Source of the DNA: Hyphochytrium catenoides
Lineage: Eukaryota > Protista > Hyphochytriomycota
NCBI GenBank assembly: GCA_900088475.1
Contig: FLMG01003815.1
Span: 1-64,000 of the forward strand
DNA length: 64,000 bases
Direction of reading: 5' to 3'
Numbering within the stretch: the stretch's first letter is position 1; every line of letters begins with the position of its first letter. Under the pieces are notes generated by a model. The model did no database searches and was not told the origin of the DNA. It saw nothing but the letters and a program-made list of their open reading frames with translations. A program made the position numbers and the translations under genes. Positions 3,701 to 52,800 of the stretch are shown here, piece after piece.

Positions 3701-4538
3701 GGAAACGCCCTTGGGAGGCGAAGTTGTCAAAGGCGCTAGGAAGAAGAGAAGCATGGCTGACAATTCAAGAGTTCATCAAAAAGGTAAGAGACGCTTTCTC
3801 TTTAGCGAGTGTGACCGGAAAACCTCCGTCTCTCTGTAGTTTTAATCCTTTTGCTTTTGCACGCACTAAAAACAGTTTGTTGTAGGGTCTGATGCTCAAG
3901 GGAAGCCTGACGCAGTCAACGAGCCATCGCGAGGGGCTTCTCTAGCAGAAGGGAGATCCTCCTTGACTGCCACTTCGCCTGGCCTGAAGTCCAATTACCG
4001 GGAAGAGAACAAGGAGAGCATTGAACTTACACCACCTAAGAGTCCTCTTCTAGCGTTTCCTGACGCTCACTCCTTAACCTTACCACCTGTTCAAGTGAGC
4101 TCATTAGAGGCAGCTTCTGGTGCAAACCCCGCAGCATCTGACATCCAGGCATTGACGATTGCCCAACCTGACGGGACACACGCAGCTTTAGAGCAGGCAC
4201 GAATTGATTCAGCAAGCGCCAACCCAGCGCTATCATCAAAAGGTCTAGGTTCTCCTGAAGCTGGTATTGGAAAGCCACCCCCCGTTATATTGGCACTAAG
4301 TGCAGGGAATACAGCGGTCACCGATGTTCAGAGGACTGCCAGAAGACCATCTTCTGCGACAATTGAAGCTCCAAAGGAGGAGTTTGTCACGCCAAGGAGG
4401 CAAAGTATCCGGACTGTATCCTCAAGCTTGAAGAGCCCTCGCTTTCTTGATGTGCATCCGGCAGCATCAGAAACAGTGTTCCCCACTAAAAGCCCTGAGC
4501 CTGCTACCTCAGAGTTGGAGAGCAATAGTGCTATTTGA
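756..4538 (+). CDS. Multi-exon coiled-coil + tandem GAF-domain protein (spans an assembly gap; 5' end uncertain)
   Basis: Spliced exons give a coiled coil (MRQLEIRASLQTRATLSLEKEK|VSLVKECHAKGKQLEKLQSQVQLLQERNTLLESEV). GAF-A reads GLAGYAVTTKSLFKTPQAEAEPRFQRTVD...NAPVLNSEGKVMAVIQVLNS..FNQVDE. GAF-B reads TLYIEDVACCQLYNDLVDL..TLICIPVLDAAGSVISIIQ. A Ser/Pro-rich tail ends at 4538. Confidence 0.7.
1168..1217. other. Assembly gap (50 N)
   Basis: Run of n characters. Confidence 1.
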
Positions 4539-16693: not shown

Positions 16694-19600
16694 ATGGCAA
16701 GGGCTACGAAGAACATAGGAGCGGCAAAGAAGCTGAATGGGAAGAAGAAGATGGAAGAGAGCTCTTCCCAGCAGCCAGAGAAGGCAGATAAGGAGCTTGC
16801 TAGCGACGAGATTGATGAGGCAGCAAACAGCGAAGAAGAGGAGGTGTCACAGAATGGCGACGTGAGCGCCGACAAGGGAGACGGAGAAGACAGTGCCGCA
16901 GAGGAGGATGCCTCAAGTGGAGATGATGACGGAGAAGACGATTCAGAAGATGACAGCGATGACTTTGAGGATCAAGGCTCATCATCTGATGAAGAGGATG
17001 GAGACACTGCCGACGGGGATGAAAGTGAGGAGGAAGACGAAACTGCAAGGCTAGCGCAGGCAGAGATACAACGCCGACGCAAGCTCAACTTTGAGAGAGA
17101 AAAGATGCTGCAGAGCATGAAGAAAGATGGCTCCTTAGATAAAGCAAAGATGCTGCACGTGGACGATCTGTCCTCCGATGACGAGGCTCCTCACAACACG
17201 ATCGGTAACGTGCCGCTGCGGTGGTATGACGAATATGACCACATTGGCTACGACGTGTCTGGCAAGAAGATTGTGAAGAAGGCACAGACCGGAGGAGACA
17301 CTATTGATGCCGTCATTGCTGCTCGAGATGACCCGAACTTTAGGTCAGGAAGGGATAGCAAACTTCCTTTTTACCAGCTCTTACCGCTGCGAAGTGCTAA
17401 CGCGCGATCTGGAAGGGCATTATCTAAGTCTAACCTGGCTCTGTTTCTTTCTATTCTTCTTTCCTACTCAGGCGCACTGTCTATGACGCGTATAATGACC
17501 GGGAAGTCGTCCTCTCTAATCGGGACCTGGAGATTATTCGTCGCATCCAGAGTGGGAGCTTCGCACATCCTGAGTTCGATGCCCACCCGGTAAGGCTCGA
17601 TATTTAAGAGAGGAACAAGCCCACTAGCTCAATTTGCGCTTGACCTTCCTCCCCTTCTTTCTTTCTTCAGTCAGACATCCTCTTTCCATCCTTGGACTTA
17701 CGACTAACACTGGTCTGGCTGCATCTCTCTTCGTGTGCAACGTAATCCAGGAATATGTCGATTATTACACTTCAAAGGTAGAGCAGCACCCACTGAGCAA
17801 TGCGCCAGAACCCAAACGACGATTTCTGCCATCTAAATGGGAGGTAAGTTTTGGTCACTGGTCCAACATATGGAGGTGTTAGTGACATGACGGTCGCTCT
17901 GCTCGGCGTAGGCCATGCGTATTGCGAAGATTGCTAAGGCAATTGAGGAGGGCCGTATAAAGCTAGGTAGCACCCTTTCCTTTGCGATTGGCCCTGTAAA
18001 CATGCCTCCCCCCATCTATAGCTGTCCAGTGCTTGCCAGCAATATGTGCAGCTCTAGCACTTTTTAATGGTGCTTACTCGCTCTCCTTGGACGACTGAAT
18101 AGATAAAGACCAGGACAAGAAGCCAGAGGTCTACATGCTCTGGAAGGCTGATGATGAACCAGACATGAGGCGCGGACCTGTCCATATCCCTGCCCCGAAA
18201 ATGGCTCTACCAGGTAGGCTGCCTAAACGGAAGCGGCACACAGGGGATACAAGAAGACTATCAATAGTTATTGACCTCTTCTCTCTGTCCAGGACATGCT
18301 GAGTCATATAACCCGCCGGAAGAATACCTCCTCACAGAGGAAGAGCAAAAAGCATGGTGAGGGCGGATGTTTGTGTGTTCAGATAGGGCAATGCATAAGC
18401 TGACACTGTAAGCAGGGAAGAGATGGACCCAGAAGACCGGGAACTCAACTTTATCCCCAGAAAGTTCAAATCCTTCAGAGAAGTATGCGGCTATGAAGGT
18501 TTCGTCAAAGAGAGATTCGAGCGCTGTCTTGATCTGTAAGTCCCTGATCTGTAGATGCGTCTAAGATGCTTGGAAACCTCACAAACCCTTACTGCTGTCG
18601 CTTCTCCGCAGATATCTCTGTCCGCGATCCATGAAGAGGAAATTGAATATCGATCCAGAATCTTTGGTGCCGCAGTTGCCGAAACCTCGAGACCTAAGGC
18701 CTTTCCCTACTACTCTTGGCATTATTTATTCAGGGCATACCGGCAGAGTTCGTTCCATCTCAGTTTGTCCAGATGGGCAGTATCTCGTTTCAGGCTCAGA
18801 TGATCAGACGTCAGTTGCTCTCGTTTAGATCTATAAGGCTTGGTGACCGATGCTTACTTTCCCACCCACCTCTTCCTCCTCTTCCTTTGTCCTTCGCTCC
18901 AGCGTTAGGATCTGGGAAATTGACACTGGCAGATTGCTTCAGACATGGCATGTGGACGCTGTCGTACACCAAGTGGCGTGGAATCCTAATCCGGACCATC
19001 AAGTCGTCGCTGTTGCCGCAGGGTCAAGGTATGAGCAGTGATTTGTCCTTCACGTCTTACACCCACCTGGTTACGATGCCGCATTGGCCCGACGGTTGGG
19101 TTGCGACTTCTTGGGCAGGTAGTTGACTTTACGTCTTGCCTTGCGACAGGGTTCTTTTGCTAGCCACTGGCACTGGGAGTGGCGACCAGACAGATGTTAC
19201 AAACGCGTTACTCGGCGGACTTGGTGACCATGAGGCTGAAGAGGTACGAGACTACTGACTGCCTTGTCCATCCAAGCGCCCCAACCTTTTGACAAGGATG
19301 ACACAGGCTAGCGGCGAGAACGGAGAGACAAGCCAGGAAGAGAAGTCTGTACGATGGGCGACTTTAGGTCAAAAGAATGCCATCAAGAAGGAGAGTCATG
19401 GCGCTGCGGTCTGGTGGGCCTCTCGTCCGGGTTCTGGAGCCAGGTTGGAGCTTGTTCATGCCGCTGAGGTCAAGATGGTCACATGGCATCGGAAAGGCGA
19501 CTACTTGGCCTCTTGCTCCCCAAGCTCAAGCAGCATGGGAGTTTATATCCATCAGATTTCAAAACGTAAGACGCAGATTCCCTTTCGCAAGAACTATGGT

Positions 19601-21131: not shown

Positions 21132-23140
21132 TCAGTAGAACTCGCCCACATCCTTTGAAGTCTGGGATTTCTTTTTGTAAAGCCGTCCAATTGTGCCAGA
21201 GTATAGCGACACAGGGGCTGAGTAGATTGCTCCTGCCGCCCATGCCGCGTAGGACTTTTTGGCCTTCTTGGTAGCGTCGTTCTTACTGGTTTCCTGTTCA
21301 GGTGCGTTATTGGATGGTGACTGGTTCTCTTTGGGCTTCATTGCCGCTAGATCCTCTGCCTCGTAAATGGTTCCTGCCTGAGGTTCACCGCTTTCATCTA
21401 GTAGGGAGATGGTGTTCGCGCCCTCACTCTTTTGCTTTGTCTTGGAACCGTAGAAGACCATGGTTGGATGGGGTAACGACTAATGCGCCGCGTCTCTGTA
21501 TGTAGATCGATGATTGATGTGGAGATCCAAACGGCCTTGAAACCGCTGCAAACGACGGCAAGTATTTTTCTCTTCCAAAGCTCGCCAAGTCTTTCAGTCA
21601 ATGCTGTCCTCGTAGATGGAGCTGAGACCGAAGTAGTCGATAAAAGTTCAAGGAGCTTCACCTTTACAGCAGAGAAGAAGAAGTCACAATCAAACCGCGA
21701 GTTTGGCAATGGTGGTTTTTTTTAGACTAAGCAGTCTCTGGGAAGAGCTCTGTCTGACCTCTGGGAGTCTGCGGGAATTGCAGTTCTGTGCCCTTCTCCA
21801 GCTCGACAAGGGTTTGCTGGATCAGAGGTCGGACAAGTCAAAGGGACGGGCTTGGTGTTCAGCCTCATGACGCAGCATTGAGAGGCTTTCTCTGCCTCCG
21901 CTCCCGCTCGCCTGTTTGCTGCTTCGCCTTGTGATGATGGATCTTCTTCTTCTCTGTGTCGTCTCATATCTCTTCTCGGTCTGACTCTCCCGATCAGGGT
22001 TGTTTCTTAGGACTTTGTTTCTGATATATCTTCTGTCTGGTTCTGGAGGGGGTTTGTGTTAGTAGGGGTAGATCCTCCTGTAGCTGGCTTGACTTCTCCG
22101 ACTCTCTCTCTCCACTCCTCTCTGTCTCTCGCACTGGCCTTTCCTTTTCCCGTTCTGTCTCATGGTGTATAGAGGACTTATTCTATGTCTCGCTCTCTCT
22201 CTGTCTCTCTCCTCCTCCCTTGGTACTACAACTGGAGGGAAGGGGGCCAGTGAGGGAGTGACTCTTCCACTCACACTCTCCTTGAATAAAAGCAAAAGGG
22301 CAAAGGAGGCCAGCCATTTTGAAGGATTCATGAAATGAAACATTCAGAATAGGTTTCCCGGTGAGTTTGCTGGAAGGTAATCCTTGAGTCTCCACTGATA
22401 GAACTAGATAAACTAATACACAAAATGGGCCAGGTCAGGAGCGCCTACGAATAACATTGTGTTTTTTTTGTTTCATTGTGAAAGTTACGCCGAGGTTCTT
22501 TCCGCATCAGATTGTTCTTACAGATGACAGGAGGGAATGTCCTGAGGGGCTAACCCGCAAACGTCGTATTTAATCTCAATTAGGCTAGTTCATTATAACC
22601 TCAGTAGTCCTCTCAAAGAGCTGTTTCAATAAATCCTTTTGTACGCCCTCCTGCTCTCTACCTATTGTCGTATTTCGGTCCAGTCGCCATAGAGAGCCGC
22701 CGCAAACTAGAACTGTCTCAAGTCTTCCCAGGCTTGTTTCCTGTCTTTTTGAGTGCAGAATATACAGCGTTGGAAGGGAAGGAGGGCGAGAGAGACGATG
22801 GAGGTTCTGTCTCGTCTGAGGCACGGCTATTACTGCTTTCAGGCCCTTTCCTTTGGACATCAGCAAGTGGTTCTTCAGATAGGGAGACAGGGTCCTGAGT
22901 TCGCCATAGAGTTCCAAGATTGGCCGGCGGCCCGTAATGATGAGGCTGCCTGTAGAGAAGTGATAGAAGCTGATGAGGGGACTCGTGGTCATTAGCAATG
23001 GGCAATAGGGATGCTGAAGCCGCGGCAAAGCGAGTAGTAGAACAGCTGGTAGAACTCGAGCACTAGAAGCTTCCTGTTGAGAGTGTGGGCAGAGTTTAGG
23101 ATGCAAGCAGTCTGTTGAGAGTGTTGGCAGAGTTTATCCT
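21132..23140 (-). pseudogene. Probable decayed or fragmented coding sequence(s), including a signal-peptide-like start
   Basis: Short minus-strand ORFs broken by stops and frameshifts (MNPSKWLASFALLLLFKESVSG...; TFIDYFGLSSIYEDSID*KTWRAL...; MVFYGSKTKQKSEGANT...). No consistent splice model and no recognisable family. Confidence 0.3.
23074..23136. repeat. 25-bp direct repeat, 38-bp period
   Basis: ctgttgagagtgtgggcagagttta (23074) / ctgttgagagtgttggcagagttta (23112). Confidence 0.9.
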
Positions 23141-23889: not shown

Positions 23890-26955
<3,066 letters not shown>

Positions 26956-28054
26956 CTAGTACGCTCACGAGAAGAACAATGACTAATGGAGCCTGATCTC
27001 CTTGATGAACCACTGGACAAGAAAGAGACAAGTAAATCGACGTACAACGGCGCCCAGCGGAGCAATAGTAGAAGATGGGAGAGGCGTAAGACCCGATAAG
27101 CTCTACCGTCGCTGCGGATGAGGCAGTCAATCGCTCCCTTCTTAGCTCTGCGCCATCCACCGACCACGAACCACATCTTCTCTTCTTCTCTGTTAGATTA
27201 CCTTTATGCACTGAAAGAAGGCTGACACAATCAACAAAAATGCTTTGTATATTGACGCTCATGTGTCAAAATGAAGTGATCCTCCGCCTGTTCTTCCAGT
27301 TCTTCCTCTGTACCAAGCAGTCCCAAACTTGACAAATGGTAGTTTGATGCCTCGATACTTGACAGGATGTCAATTCACGGCTGTTTGTGGACTGAAGAGA
27401 CAGTCTTTCAGAAGACTTGTAAGAAGAAGTCAGGTGAACAGCTCCGTGGACCTTGTGTAATGATGGCGGTTAGCGGTCTCTGCCGCTGTTAGCGTGCTTT
27501 CAAACTTCAAAAAGAGGACAGAGACTCTTATTATTATTATTGGGTGATCCGCTTTCTCCTGCAACCACACCTTTATCGAGCTCTTCTCTGTAGCGATCTC
27601 TTGAGATCTGTGGAAGGCGCAGTCTTCTTCTTCAATGCTCCACCTTCCATATTGCGGCCTGAAAGTCTACTACAGATATCCCAAGGACCTAAGATACTCT
27701 GTCAGACCACACTGTCCTTCCTTCTACCAACGGCCATCCGTTATGCCAGTGGCTCTGTAGAGAGTAAGCATTAAGTAGAATCCATAAAGAACTGCCAGAC
27801 TACTGCGCCTCTTGCGGGCAGTGCACACAACTTGCTGGCATAGTGTTAGGCGAACTGTAACACAACTCGGCGACCCTGCGATTTTAGCTTCTACCGATAC
27901 CACAAGGCGGGGCTCTAATCCGGGGTGGGGATAATGACAACAGAGAGTAGCAATCCGGTAAGCGTCCTCTTCATGACCCCAAGGAAGCAATTCCGCATTT
28001 CCAAACTCCAAGCCTTACCGTCCCTATATTATCTCCACAACTCTATAGGAGGAG

Positions 28055-28789
28055 ATGAGTGCCAGTGGTGACGGGCGGGATGTCTTGGTCTCCACCCAAG
28101 CAACTCAGCCCATGCTCTCCTCTATCCCCATTCGCAAAGCACCATCACACAAGGCTGACAAGGAAAACAGCAACCCTAATAATCTCGTACTGATGCCTTC
28201 GAAGCTTCCTTCACTCCTAAAGCGGCCCTTGGCTCGAAGTGCTTTTGTCACCTCAGCTGCCTCGCTAGACGACTCAGACCACCTTTTACAAGAGCATTCA
28301 GCTGACGCAGACGGAGTTGAAGCAAATGCCTATTCACAAACGGAAGAGGCTGAGAGCTCGGAGGAAACCTTATTAGCGCTGACTGATGAAGATCTACAAG
28401 CAGGAGATAGCCAAGATGCTGCCCTTCAGAGTTCTGTGGATGGCTCTGTATATGAAAATGCCAAGCTAAAGCTGCGGCTCGATTACTTATCAAGGGAGCG
28501 GGATTTCCTCTTTCAGAGGCTCCAAGATATAGAACAAGCTGTTCTAGGTTTCAGGTCGGAATTCCCAGCAGAGGGGGACTGGAGGCATGCCTTGTGCGAA
28601 GATGTGCTCCAAATTCTGTATGTAGTCGATGATGAGCCTAGCAATCAGGATGATAGTGGCCTACCGCAAGAGTTAGTTGAGGAAGATCAAGCTGACGAAG
28701 ACGAGTCAACTCAGGACCCGTCTCAGTCATGGCCAGAAGCAATAGTGCAGGGGGAGTTGCCAGAGCTGCCTGACGATACTATCCTCTAG
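28055..28789 (+). CDS. EB1 C-terminal (EBH) domain protein lacking the calponin-homology domain; intronless
   Basis: ENAKLKLRLDYLSRERDFLFQRLQDIEQ...LCEDVLQILYVVDDE matches the EB1 consensus LKLTVEDLEKERDFYFGKLRNIE...IVDILYATDE. Acidic tail. The disordered N-terminus contains SSIP, SKLP and DKEN. Confidence 0.78.
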   Translation: MSASGDGRDVLVSTQATQPMLSSIPIRKAPSHKADKENSNPNNLVLMPSKLPSLLKRPLARSAFVTSAASLDDSDHLLQEHSADADGVEANAYSQTEEAESSEETLLALTDEDLQAGDSQDAALQSSVDGSVYENAKLKLRLDYLSRERDFLFQRLQDIEQAVLGFRSEFPAEGDWRHALCEDVLQILYVVDDEPSNQDDSGLPQELVEEDQADEDESTQDPSQSWPEAIVQGELPELPDDTIL

Positions 28790-29482: not shown

Positions 29483-32400
29483 ATGAGGTACCACACTTTG
29501 AAGTTGTCTTCTCTGCAATGTGGGCTCTGTGGCTGTTACTCATATGTTCTGCTTGGAGTCTTAGGAGTCTTACCTTTCCTCCTCTGGCCTTTTCAGCAAG
29601 GGCAAAGTCTTCAAGTTTGGAGGCTCCTCCGTGGGCTCTCCCTCGCGGATGGAGCAGGTCTTGGCGCTCATCCGAAGCTCACAGGTACGCTGTCATTGAG
29701 AATGCTTTCTAGCGGCGCTCGCCATTTAAGGAGCATTTGCACAATTAGGATGAGGTTCTGGGCGTCGTGGTGTCTGCGATGGGCGATACCACGGACTACC
29801 TACTGGCTGCATCTGAGTCGGCTTGGCAGGGAGATTTGGAAGGTAGCTTTGAGTGGGTTGATAAGCTTGAAGCTAACGCCGTCAGGAATGTCTGCGACTG
29901 CAATGGTAAGAGGAAAGGGCTAATCAGACGTTGAAGAGGTGGTAGGGAATCTTCAGTCGGCATATTTCCGGTCTATGAAAGATCTACTCAGACCGAGTAG
30001 GCGAGCAGAACGGCAGTAAGAAAGTTGGCAGGCCGGATGGCAGATGAGACAGATAGAAGAAGGGGACCATATCTCATGCGAGCTAAGATCCGTCACAGTG
30101 GCTCGTCCGCTGGAGAGGCAAGAAAGCGAAACCAGAGTCAAGCAGTTCTTCCAACCCCTTCGAGAAATTTTGCGCGGCATCTTCTACCTGAGGGAGCAGA
30201 CAGCTCAGGCCCTGGATAAGGTGATGGCTTTTGGAGAAAGGCTAAGCGCGAGCCTAATAGCGGTAAGGGGTAGGAAACCAGTGCGACCCTGGAATGGATG
30301 CCCGGACAGTGTTATTTATCATAGAACGCGGGTGCCTGACCTCTGTCTGTCTCGGTCGTCATGTCCTTTCGTCGCGTTCCTTCATTGGCATCCCCAGGTT
30401 TGACGTTCCACACAGACCTAACCCGCTTTGGTAGGAACTGCTATCGGCCAATGGCGTCCCTGCGGTGTACGTGGATGCTCAAGAATGGGTCACAACTGAC
30501 GAGACATTCGGGTCTGAACTTCTTGTTCTCTTCCGGATTTCTCCTTTTTCAAAGAGTACCGTCTTAGCTCCGTCTCAGTCTAGCTTGCTTCCACTCCGCT
30601 GTTTAGCTGATTCTACCTCCGCCCTCGCACAGCCGGGCGGATGTAGATTTTCCTACTTCAAGGATGAAGCTGCTCCAACTTGCAAGCTCTTGGGAGGGGA
30701 GGATTCCAATCATTACTGGCTTCATAGGCAGATCAAAGGGTGGAAAGACTACGACACTGGGGAGAAATGGCTCAGATTACACTGCTACACTGGTAGCAGC
30801 TTCTTTGCAGGTTCGAGGGGAGGCTTCTAGCTGCGTCGACACCCGCTTAGTTCTTTCCCTCTTCCTCTTCCTTTAAACTAGGCGTCAATGGTAGTCATCA
30901 ACACCGATATTTCAGGAGTGATGACGGCAGACCCTGGTATCGTGGACAATGTACTCCCAGGTATCTATTGGGATGACTTTAAAATCTAGGTGGTAGCTAA
31001 ACGGGCCGCGCACTTGCTGAGTAGTCCAGGAGCTAACCTACAAGGAGGCAGTGGAGCTTGCTATCTATGGTACAGGAATTTTTCATGCTCGAACCATGTT
31101 GCCACTGATAGACTCTGGTAAGCTTGCGATGGCTCTTGTGGCCCTTGCCTCTGACCTACACCTACTAGGCTCCGGTGGCGCCCATCTTTTGCCAAGCTTG
31201 CTTTCCCATGCCAGCCTCCGCGTCGTTGCCCTATTTCAGTTGCCCACTGCTTAGCGTTTTCCGGTCTCTTTCTGTAACATCTGTCAATCATCCGCCAATG
31301 CAGGCATCCCTATGTTGATAAGAAACACGATGAACCCTGAAGGGCCGGGCACCCTCATCGTTTACGAGGTCTCTAGTGCTGACAGAGTCACGTGCATAAC
31401 GTCGCTTGAGAATCTTGCGATGTTTGAGGTATCGTCCAAGCGACAGCTTCGACTTAAATGCCATAATATTCTGACGCGTTCGACTGTGCGCTCGAGCACT
31501 CAGCGACTTTGATAAGATTCTTTCATTGCGGAGTTTCCCGACCCTTGCGCTCACAACTGCCGATTGTCCGTGCTTCCTCTCAGGACAGTCGCCTACTATT
31601 TGCTCTGCTTGTTAATCCGCGGTTGCCCACCCATGCATCACCTGACCCTTTCTCTTGGGCTCTGTCGCCCCTATCGCTGCGATTCGTCATCGGCAGGTCC
31701 GCCCACATGTCTTTCTGGATAACTCTCGCCATCTTCTTGGAGAACTGTCAGGCCGCGTGACACGGTGCCTGGGACAGCGGGGAATCGAGATTTGGTCTGC
31801 CATGACTGCTGCCCACGGTCAGGCCATTTCAGTGGTTGTGTCTGGAGATCCAGAGGTAGGACCGTCTATTCCTCTTCAACTTCAGACTTTGTACACAGCT
31901 TAATATGAGGACAACAATGGCTTCCTTTATGTCGTTCGTCAGTTTCCTCACAGTTTCCTAGTTTGCACTCACCTTCAATTATCTTGTATCCGGATTGACA
32001 ACTTCACTTTTTACTTACACCAGGAGGCGGAGGAGTCTCTGAAGGCAGAGTTTAAGAAGGAAGTGGCAGGCGGAATTTTGGAGGGCATCGTACCGTCTTC
32101 GCCAGTTACTCTACTTTCCGTCGTAGGGGATAACATAAGAGACCGAACGGACGTTTGTGCGCGCTTCTTTGGAGCCCTGAAAATGGTTCGTGTCGTCTGA
32201 GATATGTAAAATGGCTTATCTACGTCCTGTGCCTCTTACTTGCGTGACGCAGACCCCTATTCCCATGGCCTTCTCACCTGTCTAATGTGTGATCTCGTCT
32301 CTCTTTTTTTTCACTAATAATAATCACCGTTAACGAAAGGCTGGAGTACCTGTGCTAGCAGTGTCTCAAGGCCCGAGCTCGAGAACATTATCCTGCGTTA

Positions 32401-35483: not shown

Positions 35484-37487
35484 TTAGATATCTCGATCTT
35501 CTCGCCAGAATGGGTCTTTATAGCCACAGTCACCATAGTTTCCAAGCCCACCCCTCCCATCACTACCTGCAAAGCCGACAAAGCAAGTGCATCGTCCGTT
35601 CTCATGATTGCATATTCCTCGATTTGAGCATGGCGCCATTTCTTTTGTGCCTTCCTGTAACTGTATGATGGACAGCTCCAAGTCTCCGGGAGGACTGGCA
35701 AGAGCAAGAATAGAAGGTAAAGGCCCATGCACGGTCCTGAAGTGGATTGTTATCACATTCGACCCATCAGCAGTACAGGCAGTGCCTCTTGTTGGTGAAA
35801 AGGTAACCGTAACCTTGCCAATACTGGGTAGCAGCTCTAGTTGTGTCTGTACATATAAGGCGCTTGCATCGAAGGGCATAAAGCCCGTCCTATGGTCACG
35901 GAAGGACAACATGAAGCTTCCTTCTGTGCCTGTGCAAGTTATCTGCTGTATTTCATCCACTTGGCCGTCTGTAAGCGGATCATCGCCCATCGGACAGCTT
36001 CTAAGCGAGCAGTCATGGCCCTCCCAACCAGGGTCACACTTGCAGCCCTGAACCTTGTCGAAGTCCCAGGTTTGTGGAGTGTTGGGCGTTGAACCATAAG
36101 TGAAGCCAGCTGTCACTCCGTTGACTTGAGCCGCTTGAGCAAGCAGTTCCATGGTAAGACATTGGCCATGTCCACTGCAAGCTGGTGTGCCGGGGCACTT
36201 CAAGCGCTCGCAGGCACCGCCTTCAAAGTTTGGAGAGCATTGACATTCTCCCGTATCACGATTACACAGCCCCATGTTGGAGCACTCTGCATAGTTATGT
36301 GCATGGTTCTCTGCTACCGGGAGATCAAACCAGGCCTTACCAACCGGGCAGCTCCTCAAGCTGCAGTCACCACCATGCCAGCCAACGGGGCATACGCAGA
36401 CGTGGCTAGGACCCTCAGGGCAGTAGCCACGTCCGCTGCATGGAGGCGAGCCAGGACATGTAACAAAGTTAGACGTTGCGAAGCCACAGTCTCCCCTCTG
36501 ACCGATCTTTCCGTAGCCGTCGCTGGTGTCAAAGTTATCGAAGCACCTGCAGACACCTGTTTGATAGTCACACTTACCCCGCCTTGAGCAAGGCTCATCC
36601 TCTTTCGTTCCCTTCACCACCTCTCGGATCCTAAGCTGCGGTTCCGCCTGTGATGCGCCGTTGACCAGCTTGGAGGTACCCACAAGCAGTGGGAGGTCCC
36701 CAAAGTCCTGAAGAAACTCGATAAAGGACGTCGTTCCCTGTGCAGAGCAGAGTTGTCCATTTGGCGCGTTGATGCTAACACTCACACCATGAAGTGTAGG
36801 CAGAGCGTTTAGTTTTTTCATCAACAACTGCGCAGTATCATCGGCGTTGATGTGCTCAGTCGTCTCCTTTCGGAAGCTTAACATTAAATAACCAGATGTC
36901 GCTTGGCAAAACAACTCCATCCGGTGGTTTGCCTGTCCTGTTGTCAGGGGGTCGTCTCCTGATGGACAGAGGCGGAGGGAACAGTCGTATCCGCCATACC
37001 CCCGGTCGCAAATGCAGCCGTAGATCTTATCACTGTCCCAGTTGGAGCCATACTGATGGACAATCCCGAGGCCCGGATCCTTTTGAGCGGCAGCGTAAGA
37101 GAATGGTTTACAGGCTCCATGGCCGCTGCAGCGATTGGGGCAAGAAAGTCTCTGGCAAGCATCACCTTCGAAGCCTTCATCACATTGGCAGACTCCCGTT
37201 TCTTTGACGCAGCGTCCCCTATTAGAGCACTCTGCGTACCCATGCGCGACATCGATCTCCGTAGCATAGTCAGCCCAGGCTATGCCCTTTGGACAAGTGC
37301 GCAGGGAGCAGTCTGGGGCTCCGTCGTATGTCTCTTCGCACTGGCAAACCAGGTTCGCCTGAGGACATGCTCCATTTCCGGAGCAATCATTCGGGCAAGT
37401 CTCGCTAGCAGCATCAAGTATGTGGGAGAGGATAAGGGTACAGAGAAGAAGGACCCACTGCCCGCACCATCGAGATGAGAGGACCAT
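35484..37487 (-). CDS. Secreted EGF-like (tenascin/teneurin-type) Cys-rich protein, mastigoneme/Sig1-like family; single exon, two tandem modules
   Basis: Likely start MVLSSRWCGQWVLLLCTLILSHILDAA (signal peptide) at 37487. Repeated AECSNRG.C...TG.CQC...FEG.AC.RL.CP, DCSLR.CP.GDDPLT.GQ and GTKE..PCS.RG.C motifs, each present twice. Confidence 0.85.
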   Translation of the reverse strand: MVLSSRWCGQWVLLLCTLILSHILDAASETCPNDCSGNGACPQANLVCQCEETYDGAPDCSLRTCPKGIAWADYATEIDVAHGYAECSNRGRCVKETGVCQCDEGFEGDACQRLSCPNRCSGHGACKPFSYAAAQKDPGLGIVHQYGSNWDSDKIYGCICDRGYGGYDCSLRLCPSGDDPLTTGQANHRMELFCQATSGYLMLSFRKETTEHINADDTAQLLMKKLNALPTLHGVSVSINAPNGQLCSAQGTTSFIEFLQDFGDLPLLVGTSKLVNGASQAEPQLRIREVVKGTKEDEPCSRRGKCDYQTGVCRCFDNFDTSDGYGKIGQRGDCGFATSNFVTCPGSPPCSGRGYCPEGPSHVCVCPVGWHGGDCSLRSCPVGKAWFDLPVAENHAHNYAECSNMGLCNRDTGECQCSPNFEGGACERLKCPGTPACSGHGQCLTMELLAQAAQVNGVTAGFTYGSTPNTPQTWDFDKVQGCKCDPGWEGHDCSLRSCPMGDDPLTDGQVDEIQQITCTGTEGSFMLSFRDHRTGFMPFDASALYVQTQLELLPSIGKVTVTFSPTRGTACTADGSNVITIHFRTVHGPLPSILALASPPGDLELSIIQLQEGTKEMAPCSNRGICNHENGRCTCFVGFAGSDGRGGLGNYGDCGYKDPFWREDRDI

Positions 37488-37940
37488 AGCAATAACGTCG
37501 GGTTTGTAAACGTCTCGTTGCACTGGTAGCAACCAATTCCCGCTCTTGAAAAGCCAGCGACTATGCAGTGCTCTTGACGTAGCAGCACCGTCACAAAGTT
37601 CCCCGCATGCCCAAAGAAGAGCGTAAGTATGAGACAACTCAGCTTCTTTGGCAGCCTCCGCAAGCACTAGCAGGGTCAACAGAAACCCAATGCACCATGC
37701 GTTCTTGTCCTATGACCTCTAGCATCTTTATTATCATGGAGCATATTCATTACCTTTACCGAGGACGCGGCGTTTCACTTGATTCCTCAAGAACTAATTC
37801 TATCGTACGAATTACAATAGCTAGCTTCGGGTATTCTCTGCTAGATGCGGTCGTAATATCATGCAGCTCTGCTGATATGCAGTTCAACCTTGAGTTTCGG
37901 CTCGATATGGTTGTCGTCACGGTTATTCTGGGGGACTCTG

Positions 37941-42451: not shown

Positions 42452-43375
42452 ATGGTGAACGTCACCCAGACCGCACTTATACTTACTGGCCTGCTTGCCG
42501 CAGGAGTGCAGACGGCAGTTGCGACCGAGAAGATTGACGACTGGAGCAAAGTTAATGTAGTTGTCACCCAGTTTGACGAGGCAAAATGTGCTGAGAGAGG
42601 TGGTAGCTATGACAATAAGAAAGCTGAAGGAGCCAATGTTGAGGGAGGAGCTTGCTACCTAAAGAACGGTGAAGACCTTCTTGCTGTCTTCGGTGTGAAG
42701 GACAGCGAGTTCTCTACCTCCAAAATCAACCTGCAGGAAGTCGACATGCTTGTAAATCACTTCTGGCCAGTGCCAAAGGATGGCAATGCCGCCTCGATCA
42801 CTATCGTGCAAAACGATGACACTACCGGCAAGATTGTCTACAACGTCAAGCTGAAGACGGACTGCAAAATCGAAGGAGAGGAAATCCAAGTGCTCGAGTC
42901 GCTGTCCCAGTGGGATAGCGACAAGGATTTCCCAGCTCTAACGATGCAAGCCACTTTTAAGGACGGTTTCCTTACATTGAATGGCTCTACAAGTGAGATC
43001 AAGGGTAACAAACGCTTCTATCAGTTCAATGCCATCGGTGCGCTGGCCAAGGACAAACTCTGCAAGGAAGCAGCATCTTTCTCTGTGGTTCCTGCTGACA
43101 GTTGGTTCGGGTACAGAGCGAAGCAGTCGGGCAACTGGCGTTTCGGGTTTGGCGAAGACTATAAGTGCAAGGAAGATGACAAGATATGTTCAGCAGCCAT
43201 GCCACGTGATACTGTCTTGTCATCAGTCGGAACATCAAGTGGTGACGCCCCAACCCCTTCAGGCGAAACAAAGGAGACTACCACTTCCACAGCTACAGCT
43301 TCGCCGCCTCTTCTGTGGCTGGCTGGTCTCACCTCTGCGGCGGTTGCGGCTTTGTCTTCTGTGGTCTTTGCTTGA
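42452..43375 (+). CDS. Secreted, probably GPI-anchored surface protein of unknown family; single exon
   Basis: 307-aa clean ORF with signal peptide MVNVTQTALILTGLLAAGVQTAVA and a 6-Cys ectodomain. It has an S/T-rich stalk (TSSGDAPTPSGETKETTTSTATAS) and a terminal hydrophobic tail (PLLWLAGLTSAAVAALSSVVFA) with no cytoplasmic residues. Confidence 0.85.
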   Translation: MVNVTQTALILTGLLAAGVQTAVATEKIDDWSKVNVVVTQFDEAKCAERGGSYDNKKAEGANVEGGACYLKNGEDLLAVFGVKDSEFSTSKINLQEVDMLVNHFWPVPKDGNAASITIVQNDDTTGKIVYNVKLKTDCKIEGEEIQVLESLSQWDSDKDFPALTMQATFKDGFLTLNGSTSEIKGNKRFYQFNAIGALAKDKLCKEAASFSVVPADSWFGYRAKQSGNWRFGFGEDYKCKEDDKICSAAMPRDTVLSSVGTSSGDAPTPSGETKETTTSTATASPPLLWLAGLTSAAVAALSSVVFA

Positions 43376-49837: not shown

Positions 49838-52800
49838 CTAGGACGAGGAAGAGTGAGAGAATGGACTGCCAGTGACCCAAAGGGGAAAGTAGGGATCACT
49901 CAATGGAACCAAGTCGTCTATACATAGGGTAGGCAGGTATCTGGCTGGCTTGTAATTGCAGCCTCCGTGCATTCGATTCGTCAACTCAATATATTGCAGC
50001 CGCTGGAGGCTGGAAGCATCTATTGCCGCGCGGCTGCGTATATCGGCCTAAGTTGATGGCAAGCGTTTGTTAATATACGAAGCGGAAGGAGGGTTTAGGC
50101 AACGTGTTGAGAGTTTAGAGACTGTCGAAACCAAGTGGTTGGAACAGTTGTAGCATAAGCGCCTTGATCGAGAGACACAATCACTCTCCTTGGCACGCTC
50201 TTACCGCTTTTGATCTAAAGCTCTCCGATAGATTAAGAAGAGCAATCTGCGAATAGGATAAACCCTTCTCGTTAGGTTTGGGACAGAATCAAACAATAGA
50301 GCTCTCCTACCTCAAGGTCTTCCTGTGTTGGAGCCTGTGTCTCTGGTCGTCTGAGCTGCTCCAGTATTGGGGCACCTTGCGGATCTTGGTCTTTGCCAGC
50401 ATTAGAGAGCAGCTGAGTATACCTTTGTACCATTATATTGTGCTCTAGCACCGCGCTAGGGCAAATAAGGGGTGATTGAGCGTCCGACGGTGAGAGGTGA
50501 TAGGGGTAGGCAATGATTAGTGACGACAGTAGCTTGAATTGAAGAGAGTTTTGGGTTAAGCGAAGCCTTATCCGTTCCTTACCGATGTAGTTCTTGCCTT
50601 GCCCTGCGGACCAGTTTTATCCGTTCCTCTTCCTGTCGCTCTAACATCTCCCGATCGAATCCGCACCATTTACTACATGTAAAGCACAACGATGCCGCCA
50701 AACATGCGGGTCAGAAACTCGGCGGTTTATAAATTCCTCAGCAGGCAAGATTGGACATGTCGAATGAGTGACTAGTACTTGCCAGCAGGTGCGGGCTCCA
50801 ATCATACCAGAAAAAGCAATGCACGAAAGTACAGGGCATGGTGAGGCGACGCAAAGAAGAACTTACGCTAGATATGGTGCTGCAAGCTCTATACGATCCG
50901 ATGGCGTGAGGCTAGGGCAGTAGCTGACAGCTGTCAGCACCTTTCCTGGCTGACGCTCTGCTACTCCAGGTAGAATTTCCTGCAAGGTAGAGCCACCAGA
51001 CGCTCGCTTAGAATAGCCATGGTTCTCATAAGCTTTCCTATCCCCACTATAACCATTTGGCAGCTTTTCGACAGCTCTCATCCTGAGTCCGCAAACATGT
51101 TTATTACCTCTTTCTGGAGGGCGGCAGTCTTGCCTCTGTGCGTCATCTTCAACCTCAGTCCCTCTGTCGAATTGTTAAAGCGGTAATGTTTTCAAAGTTG
51201 GCTAGCTGAAACAAGAAAGTAACGGTGACAGACTCCTCACCTTCTTGATCACCATGCTTCTTTAGACTTTTTGACTGCGGTTTGGCTTTCTTCTTCCTTT
51301 TTGAGGTTCCTTTGGCAGTTCCCTTAAAAGAGCGCTCCGAGGTGGCCCTAGGTGCTTGCAGCTTGACGTCATCAGGAATTGGAGCAGAAGCACTCGTCGA
51401 GGCGTTGCCCGTAGTTAGCGAACGTTGAGGCACCAGGTCTTTGTTCTCCTCTAAGACTTTGGCACTCCTTAGCTGATCCGGCGAGATGTCCGACGGTCTT
51501 TTGAGGACAGCAGCTGCCGCCTGTGGGGTTGTCAAGTCTGAACTTTCCCGCGCAGTGCAACTGGTATCTCTTGTAGGAGTTTCGCGGAGGGGCTGCAACG
51601 GTGACTTGGCACTTTCACTGGAAGACGTGAAGGGAGATGGACACGAGACCAGCTTTGGTGGTGTCGGTGGCTCATTCTCCTTCCTAGAACTGCAGGCCTG
51701 AAGGAAAGACACTGAGTCGGAAGCCAACGCCTAGCGCACAGGTAAGACAGGACTATACAGAAAAAACAGCTACATCGTCTTCCTACGTTCTCATCCTGAA
51801 TTGGCGGCGCGGAAAACATGCTGTGGGCATCAATACTCTGGGAGGTAACACTCTGAGAGGCTTTCTTTTGTAACCCTCTGTTGCTGTCTCTGTTCTCTAA
51901 GACGTCAGACAGGGCTTCGTCCTTGCAATCTTCTCTTGGTGCCAGCAGCCGAGTTTTTTTCTCCTGGCTCGCCTTCGGAGATGGCCAATCAAAAGAAGCT
52001 TTGACATGCGTCTTCTCTGAAGTAGTCCCGCTATCCCCAATCGTTGCTTTTACCACCTTTGGAGATCTTGCCTTCTTTGTCGTCTTCTTCTCCTTCTTCT
52101 TTCCCTTTTTAGGTTCTTTTTCTTTGAGGGCTATGTACAGGAGCGGCGCTCTTAGTTTGCGTTAGGTTGCTCTTTCAGCATGTAGCATGGGGCACAACGT
52201 AAAGCAAGGCCGGAGGAGGAATGAGAACAGAGGTGCGTTGATTGGACCGCCTACCTGTTTGTTTGTTGTCCAATAATGGGCTGGAGCGACTCTGTAAAGT
52301 TCGGATCTCAAGCTCGCCGGAACCTTTTCCTTCAGCCGCGGTAGCCGTCGCAAGCAACGGGGCGTTTTCTGTCAAAGGAAGGTTATAACGCTGATTCGGT
52401 TCCCTGCCACTCTGTGAAGCGTCGTTCTCGAACACATCTGACCTTTGCTGGAATGGGCCAAGGCGGCAGACACGGCGACTCCCGGGTCTACCTGAGATAT
52501 CAGCTGCAGTGGTCCGTGAATTCCTAGTGCATCCGAGATGGCATGATGGTATACTGCCCCGTCTGAGCAAATTACCAATGAATCCCTACCATCCTGTCGG
52601 GTGATGAGGGAAGTGATTCCAAGAACCAGTCAGCCCCAGACTAGGCGACTTGAGGTGGTCATAAATCGTGGCAGAGGCCAAGAAAGAGGCTGCAGATTGA
52701 GAAAGAGGAAGGGTGCCTTACCGGCGTGCCGCATATGGAGGTTATGGTCTTCATTAGCCTTCGCCGTTTCAATACTGAAGTCGGATTATCTTTCGATGAG

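Follow-up and report, generated by a model that had tools for sequence, protein, structure and literature searches.

The plus-end network of microtubules has EB proteins as its hub. To our knowledge, all described members of this family pair a CH head with an EB-homology (EBH) tail, and tails devoid of the CH head exist only as laboratory dominant-negatives. Engineered CH-less EB1-C fragments heterodimerize with full-length EBs and are weakly recruited to microtubule tips through them (PMC2686402).

Residues F216, Y217, and F218 of EB1 have been termed invariant. The substitutions F216A, Y217A, F218A, K220A, I224A, and E225A abolish binding, R222A and E211A alter it, Y217F is the only tolerated substitution, and I224A yields a monomer (PMC2171753). 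The pocket that accepts the ligand Ile is made up of Tyr217, Phe218, Leu221, Arg222, Ile224, Glu225, Leu246, and Tyr247, and most of the affinity of EB1 for its ligands comes from the C-terminal segment 253-FVIP-256, which folds over the ligand (PMC12695022). Deletion of the EB1 C terminus weakens the binding of 11MACF from 3.5 to 41.5 μM and that of its VLLRK variant from 0.016 to 6.3 μM (PMC12695022).

For the ligands, the SxIP rule of Jiang et al., as quoted in PMC3649978, reads X1-X2-[ST]-X3-[IL]-P-X4-X5-X6. X1 to X4 must include K or R at one or more positions, X1 to X6 must be free of D and E, and the motif must lie in a disordered region; according to the same source, SxIP fragments from other proteins that comply with the rule do not always track EB1 in cells. 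In the engineered MACF ligand PSKIPVLLRK (Kd of 16 nM) and the natural CDK5RAP2 ligand SRLPRILIKR (Kd of 21 nM), a hydrophobic pair followed by basic residues after the motif provides an approximately 100-fold gain in affinity (PMC12695022).

The protein described here, referred to below as the EBH protein, is encoded by an open reading frame (ORF) on contig FLMG01003815.1 of Hyphochytrium catenoides. It appears to carry, on one chain, an EBH domain and a very good copy of the motif bound by EBs, a combination of which no description was found in the literature searched. The same literature yielded neither a natural CH-less EBH protein nor a self-complementary member of the EB family, that is, one with an EBH domain and its own ligand motif. 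Like EB1/EB3, Bim1, and Mal3, this protein combines an EBH-like coiled coil and four-helix-bundle hairpin with an acidic tail. The signatures ERDFxFxKLxxIE and ILY follow one another as they do in those proteins, and it shares with canonical EBs the residues F216, F218, L221, I224, E225, L246, and Y247 (EB1 numbering). Unlike canonical EBs, it lacks the CH domain, the linker homology, the FVIP lock, and the EEY/F motif, contains FLF in place of FYF as well as the replacements R222Q and E211S, has a loop extended by 7 residues, and carries its own SxIP-type motifs. Judged from its sequence, with no CH domain, a changed FYF patch, and no EEY/F, it falls short of full membership in the EB (RP/EB, MAPRE) family as defined. 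It most likely represents a real, lineage-restricted EB-family derivative without the microtubule-binding CH head.

Locus and gene structure

The DNA analyzed was a 64,000-nucleotide stretch of the contig (the window), and the features of the locus are listed in Table 1. The ORF is intact, running from an ATG through 244 sense codons to a TAG, as expected from the sequence-only reading, which had described an intronless 244-aa frame. An in-frame TAG at 28046-28048 is located three codons 5′ of the ATG. At the base composition of the window, about 0.05 stop-free runs of 244 codons would arise by chance per 64 kb. The codon-usage log-likelihood is +40 bits in the frame of the ORF, whereas none of the other five frames exceeds −9, and its per-codon score ranks 54th among 909 stop-free segments. 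This signal comes mainly from two acidic stretches, with almost nothing contributed by aa 1-65 or by the EBH domain, so that codon usage lends only modest support to coding.

On the left, a 1.1-kb divergent promoter region is common to the EBH ORF and the gene for ABCE1 (RNase L inhibitor). The latter gene (24000-26945, − strand) is intron-rich and divergently transcribed from the EBH ORF, with the Pfam ABC_tran domain in a downstream exon. Its first three introns measure 86, 62, and 71 nt, begin with the donors GTAAGG, GTCAGT, and GTAAGT, respectively, and provide a local reference for splice sites. On the right, the aspartate kinase gene (approximately 29565-31250, + strand) consists of several short exons, with the AA_kinase match at 30664-30873. 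Genes in the published H. catenoides genome have a mean of 3.64 introns (PMC5795050), and the neighbors of the EBH ORF are intron-rich, which makes this single-exon ORF somewhat unusual.

Several other frames were noted in the window. A 731-codon open frame at 35484-37679 (− strand), which is exceptionally long for an exon of this genome, contains teneurin-type EGF repeats (EGF_2, with an E value of 2e-23, EGF_TEN, and EGF_Teneurin). A 299-codon exon at 16694-17593 (+ strand) contains the start of the BOP1 N-terminal (NUC169) domain and belongs to a ribosome-biogenesis gene. The ORFs at 42452-43375 (+), 3963-4538 (+), 51155-51727 (−), and 22585-23106 (−), of 172 to 307 codons, have no Pfam match at an E value of ≤0.001.

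The EBH ORF might be a non-functional relic, i.e., a partial duplicate or an old 5′-truncated EB copy that has kept an open frame while being unexpressed or unselected. Its single exon, compared with the genome mean of PMC5795050, is consistent with such an origin, as is a codon signal that is weak in two of its four segments. The rarity of such a long open frame argues against it, and so do the absence of a poly-A remnant 3′ of the stop codon and the normal divergent-promoter position beside ABCE1. The EBH ORF is probably an expressed, functional gene.

Table 1. Features of the EBH ORF and its flanks, and residues of the EBH-like domain aligned with those of human EB1
Feature	Coordinates	Strand	Basis
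ABCE1 first coding exon, left locus boundary	26883-26945	−	Exon, then GTAAGG
Candidate 8-codon mini-exon MTTESSNP (ATG at 27934)	27934-27957	+	In frame across candidate intron
Candidate intron, 91 nt, GTAAGC...CTATAG	27958-28048	+	Donor/acceptor; size and donor like those of ABCE1 introns
EBH ORF, CH-less EBH-domain protein	28055-28789	+	244 codons plus stop; codon log-likelihood
SSIP, aa 22-25, in the context MLSSIPIRK (aa 20-28)	28118-28129	+	Motif scan
KEN, aa 36-38, in the context DKENSNPN, KENxxxN form	28160-28168	+	Shuffle P of 0.016 (aa 1-117)
SKLP with flanks, MPSKLPSLLKR, aa 47-57, candidate microtubule-tip localization signal	28193-28225	+	Motif scan
Acidic disordered linker, aa 66-130, 0 K/R, 18 D/E	28250-28444	+	Composition, disorder prediction
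EBH-like domain, aa 131-192 (approx.)	28445-28630	+	Pfam, phmmer, language-model features, AlphaFold, fold comparison
Acidic C-terminal tail, aa 193-244, 0 K/R, 19 D/E, without FVIP-like patch or EEY/F	28631-28786	+	Composition, alignment
Aspartate kinase early exon with KFGGSS, right locus boundary	29565-29696	+	AA_kinase match in gene
EB1 E211 replaced by S; K212 by R			HMMER alignment
EB1 E213, R214, D215 identical			HMMER alignment
EB1 F216 aligned with F151; Y217 with L152; F218 with F153			HMMER alignment
EB1 K220 replaced by R; L221 retained as L; R222 replaced by Q			HMMER alignment
EB1 I224 aligned with I159; E225 with E160			HMMER alignment
EB1 I245, L246, Y247 aligned with I187, L188, Y189			HMMER alignment

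Absence of a CH domain

Pfam searches show no CH match in the 244-aa protein, whose N-terminal 117 aa are predicted to be disordered, and none in ten stop-free pieces of the + strand between 26987 and 28068. Short patterns typical of the EB-type CH domain match nowhere in the window in any of the six frames. These results agree with the initial claim that the protein has no CH domain and that no CH-coding exons are seen upstream, at 27.0-28.0 kb.

In favor of an ordinary EB1 with overlooked CH-domain exons, a plausible CTATAG acceptor is found just 5′ of the ATG, with a matching GTAAGC donor 91 nt upstream. This acceptor, pointed out in the sequence-only reading, could be real. As a route to a CH exon it fails: only 10 residues are gained, and the candidate splice cannot bring in a CH domain because the frame of the mini-exon is closed by a stop codon at 27916-27918, leaving at most 13 codons. 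Furthermore, ABCE1 begins on the opposite strand only 1.1 kb upstream, and the searches described above found no CH match in the upstream region and no EB-type CH pattern in the window. A donor-like site at 27764 was rejected, as it is out of frame with every open upstream piece. A missed CH exon is, on this sequence evidence, nearly excluded.

The EBH-like domain

In the EBH-like domain, the extended loop leads from a coiled-coil helix into a short return helix. The EB1 C-terminal family of Pfam (PF03271) matches aa 145-189 (28487-28621) with an E value of 1.3e-5 and 25.8 bits over profile positions 1-40 of 41, a score 1.2 bits below the curated gathering cutoff of 27 bits. Of the two Pfam profiles proposed at the outset as a check, EB1 C-terminal and CH, the former is matched just under its cutoff and the latter not at all. 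In phmmer comparisons with all PDB sequences, EB1, EB3, Mal3, or EB1 chimeras account for 16 of the 17 matches of the whole protein and 19 of the 20 matches of the domain alone, with the best E values from both queries in the range of 0.006 to 0.012. Language-model features of aa 115-205 match an EB1 C-terminal cluster of the ESM Atlas at 0.92, and EB1 clusters make up 24 of 30 matches.

In the AlphaFold model of aa 110-215, a loop connects a long helix to a short return helix, and the core has pLDDT values of 89 to 97. Among 48,161 PDB chains, the top structural match (VIA) is 4e61_B, the EB1-like motif of Bim1 (Z of 7.4, 82 of 84 residues aligned, 24% identity), although the margin over unrelated helical hairpins is small; human EB1 (9co5_B) is also among the matches (Z of 5.8, 28% identity). 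Foldseek searches of the PDB with the whole-protein and domain models gave no significant match, the helical hairpin being too simple for a Foldseek search. The signatures RERDFLFQRLQDIE and LQILYVVDDE, on which an EB-homology coiled coil had originally been proposed, are both found in the protein. This proposal is supported by the full-profile, sub-cutoff match to PF03271, the EB-dominated PDB matches, the language-model features, and the fold match to Bim1. Based on the sequence and the predicted structure, aa 131-192 very probably represent a true EBH homolog.

Candidate motifs and charge distribution

The disordered segment formed by aa 1-65 contains 9 basic and 4 acidic residues and includes SSIP (aa 22-25), DKENSNP (aa 35-41), and SKLP (aa 49-52), exactly where they had been reported. 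The nonapeptide MPSKLPSLL (aa 47-55), in a region predicted to be disordered, passes the 9-residue rule in the form quoted in PMC3649978 and is the only SxIP motif in this protein to do so. SSIP fails it because its basic residues are confined to X5 and X6, leaving X1 to X4 without K or R. The surroundings of SGLP, at aa 201, are acidic. The sequence PSKLPSLLKR closely resembles both PSKIPVLLRK and SRLPRILIKR, with LL and then KR after the motif. Of the two SxIP-type motifs first proposed, SKLP, which complies with the rule as quoted and is similar to nanomolar ligands, is the stronger candidate, and SSIP is the weaker one.

Shuffling of aa 1-117 produces at least two bare [ST]x[IL]P motifs with a P value of 0.015 and at least one rule-compliant motif with a P value of 0.02 (the window-wide background is 0.07 per 117 aa). 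For a compliant motif followed by hydrophobic and basic residues, a criterion chosen post hoc, the P value is 0.0007 and the background 0.0025 per 117 aa. SKLP might well bind a canonical EB, with a chance that falls a little short of even.

The KEN tripeptide is located within the region predicted to be disordered, and its KENxxxN form is the consensus form of the KEN box. It is quite unlikely to be a working degron.

Charge is sharply segregated along the protein. The C-terminal residues, aa 190-244, include 19 D/E and no K/R and end in ...PELPDDTIL, so the EEY/F motif for CAP-Gly partners is absent; the tail had rightly been described as acidic and lacking EEY/F.

Dimerization and the ligand pocket

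Residues were mapped through the HMMER alignment to full-length human EB1, with positions in helix A corresponding to the query residue number plus 65. I159 is the counterpart of the dimer-critical I224 of EB1, and the heptad leucines are retained. Six of the eight Ile-contacting pocket residues are identical to those of EB1. The family-invariant FYF patch is altered to FLF (F151-L152-F153), and the FVIP segment of EB1 aligns to P-S-(N)-Q-D, so that the "lock" is missing. Judged by these residues, the EBH domain looks like a competent dimerizer with a pocket that is at best weakened. By analogy to the EBH-ΔC construct, this pocket probably binds SxIP ligands only weakly, and it is doubtful that it would bind them with useful affinity.

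These features bear on two further explanations. In the first, the protein is a natural dominant-negative: its EBH coiled coil would heterodimerize with a canonical EB, producing one-head dimers of low affinity for microtubule tips and reducing EB activity where the protein is expressed, and its SxIP-like motifs would be incidental. The engineered EB1-C and EB1-C-ΔAc provide a precedent, since they leave only 13 to 27% of EBs at the tips and raise the catastrophe rate (PMC2686402), and the dimer-critical Ile and heptad leucines are kept. However, the EBH domain is only about 24 to 28% identical to those of animal and yeast EBs and has a loop 7 residues longer, and even EB1c and EB2c barely heterodimerize in vitro (PMC2686402). 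The near-optimal context of SKLP would also be left unexplained, and this explanation is considered unlikely.

In the second explanation, the EBH domain takes up SxIP motifs of this same protein, in cis, resulting in autoinhibition, or in trans, forming head-to-tail chains or cross-linked +TIP networks, and the KEN box then directs its clearance at mitotic exit. A single chain does contain receptor-like and ligand-like elements, separated by about 100 disordered residues; six of the eight pocket residues are those of EB1, and KENSNPN matches the KENxxxN form. Against this stand the replacements of FYF by FLF, R222 by Q, and E211 by S at positions where Y217A abolishes binding and R222A or E211A alters it (PMC2171753), as well as the absence of the affinity-supplying FVIP segment, whose deletion costs about 10- to 400-fold (PMC12695022). 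The KEN tripeptide has a probability of about 2% by chance. Self-binding of this kind appears distinctly improbable. A related reading, a multivalent +TIP scaffold or switch in which the EBH receptor and the near-optimal ligand motif would form head-to-tail or cross-linked assemblies at microtubule ends with the protein itself and with a canonical EB, possibly cleared by APC/C via KEN, seems just as improbable. The proposal that one chain carries both receptor and ligand gains strength in the ligand half, represented by SKLP, and is weakened in the receptor half by FLF, R222Q, and the lack of FVIP. Because of these same changes in the pocket and the missing lock, binding to a canonical EB is more likely than self-binding or autoinhibition.

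Relatives in sequence databases

Word-index protein searches with the whole protein and with aa 125-200 gave no match, and a HMMER scan of 1.84 billion protein representatives found nothing at an E value of ≤0.001. Canonical EBs are not expected in the latter scan, since a 26-bit domain match is below significance at that library size; its result argues against close full-length kin. A metagenome locus scan for the EBH protein found none, and an exact-product look-up showed that it is not on record.

Two types of ESM Atlas clusters were inspected. EB1 clusters without a CH annotation, from plants (277 aa) and ascomycetes (256 aa), were rejected as CH-less kin: they have the lengths of ordinary EB1s and are therefore probably canonical, with CH domains below the Pfam threshold. 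An unnamed 85-aa oomycete cluster of 75 members matches the EBH part at 0.88 in language-model features and may be a distant relative.

The lack of relatives in the word, HMMER (1.84 billion representatives), and metagenome searches would also be consistent with a relic, as would the change of family-invariant positions to FLF and the loss of EEY/F. The retention of most dimerization and pocket residues speaks against it. A relic is a serious rival, if an unlikely one, to a functional EB-family derivative.

Possible mode of action and implications

The EBH protein shares with engineered EB1-C and EB3-C (PMC2686402) a CH-less EB C-terminal dimerization domain, which on its own is incapable of microtubule binding. 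The latter are laboratory truncations, whereas the former is a natural ORF and, unlike them, has an unrelated disordered N-terminal region of 130 residues with candidate tip-localization motifs. Like the SxIP +TIPs MACF2, CLASP, APC, and CDK5RAP2, it contains [ST]x[IL]P in a basic, disordered, acid-free context and a dimerizing coiled coil on the same chain, and its post-motif pairs match those of high-affinity ligands (PMC12695022). In contrast to these +TIPs, its dimerizer is the EBH domain itself, the only functional domain of a very small protein. By analogy, its mode of action would be that of an EB1-C fragment to which an SxIP +TIP has been joined.

The best reading, a tentative one, is that of a dimeric CH-less EB derivative that would reach plus ends by presenting its SxLP motif to a canonical EB, with the EBH domain acting mainly as a dimerizer. 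The EBH domain would form a parallel dimer, and each of the two subunits would contribute one SxLP signal for docking into the EBH pockets of a presumed canonical EB. The protein would then hitchhike to growing microtubule ends and compete there with other SxIP cargo. A second, nonexclusive route might involve heterodimers with a canonical EB that thin EB at the tips, as the engineered EB1-C fragments do.

The gene appears to be confined to one poorly studied lineage, and its practical value is limited. The EBH protein would provide a compact test case for multivalency and for the "dock-and-lock" step in the control of EB-ligand affinity. If the reading given here is true, evolution has used the head-less EBH trick, of the type known from dominant-negatives, to tune or wire the plus-end network.
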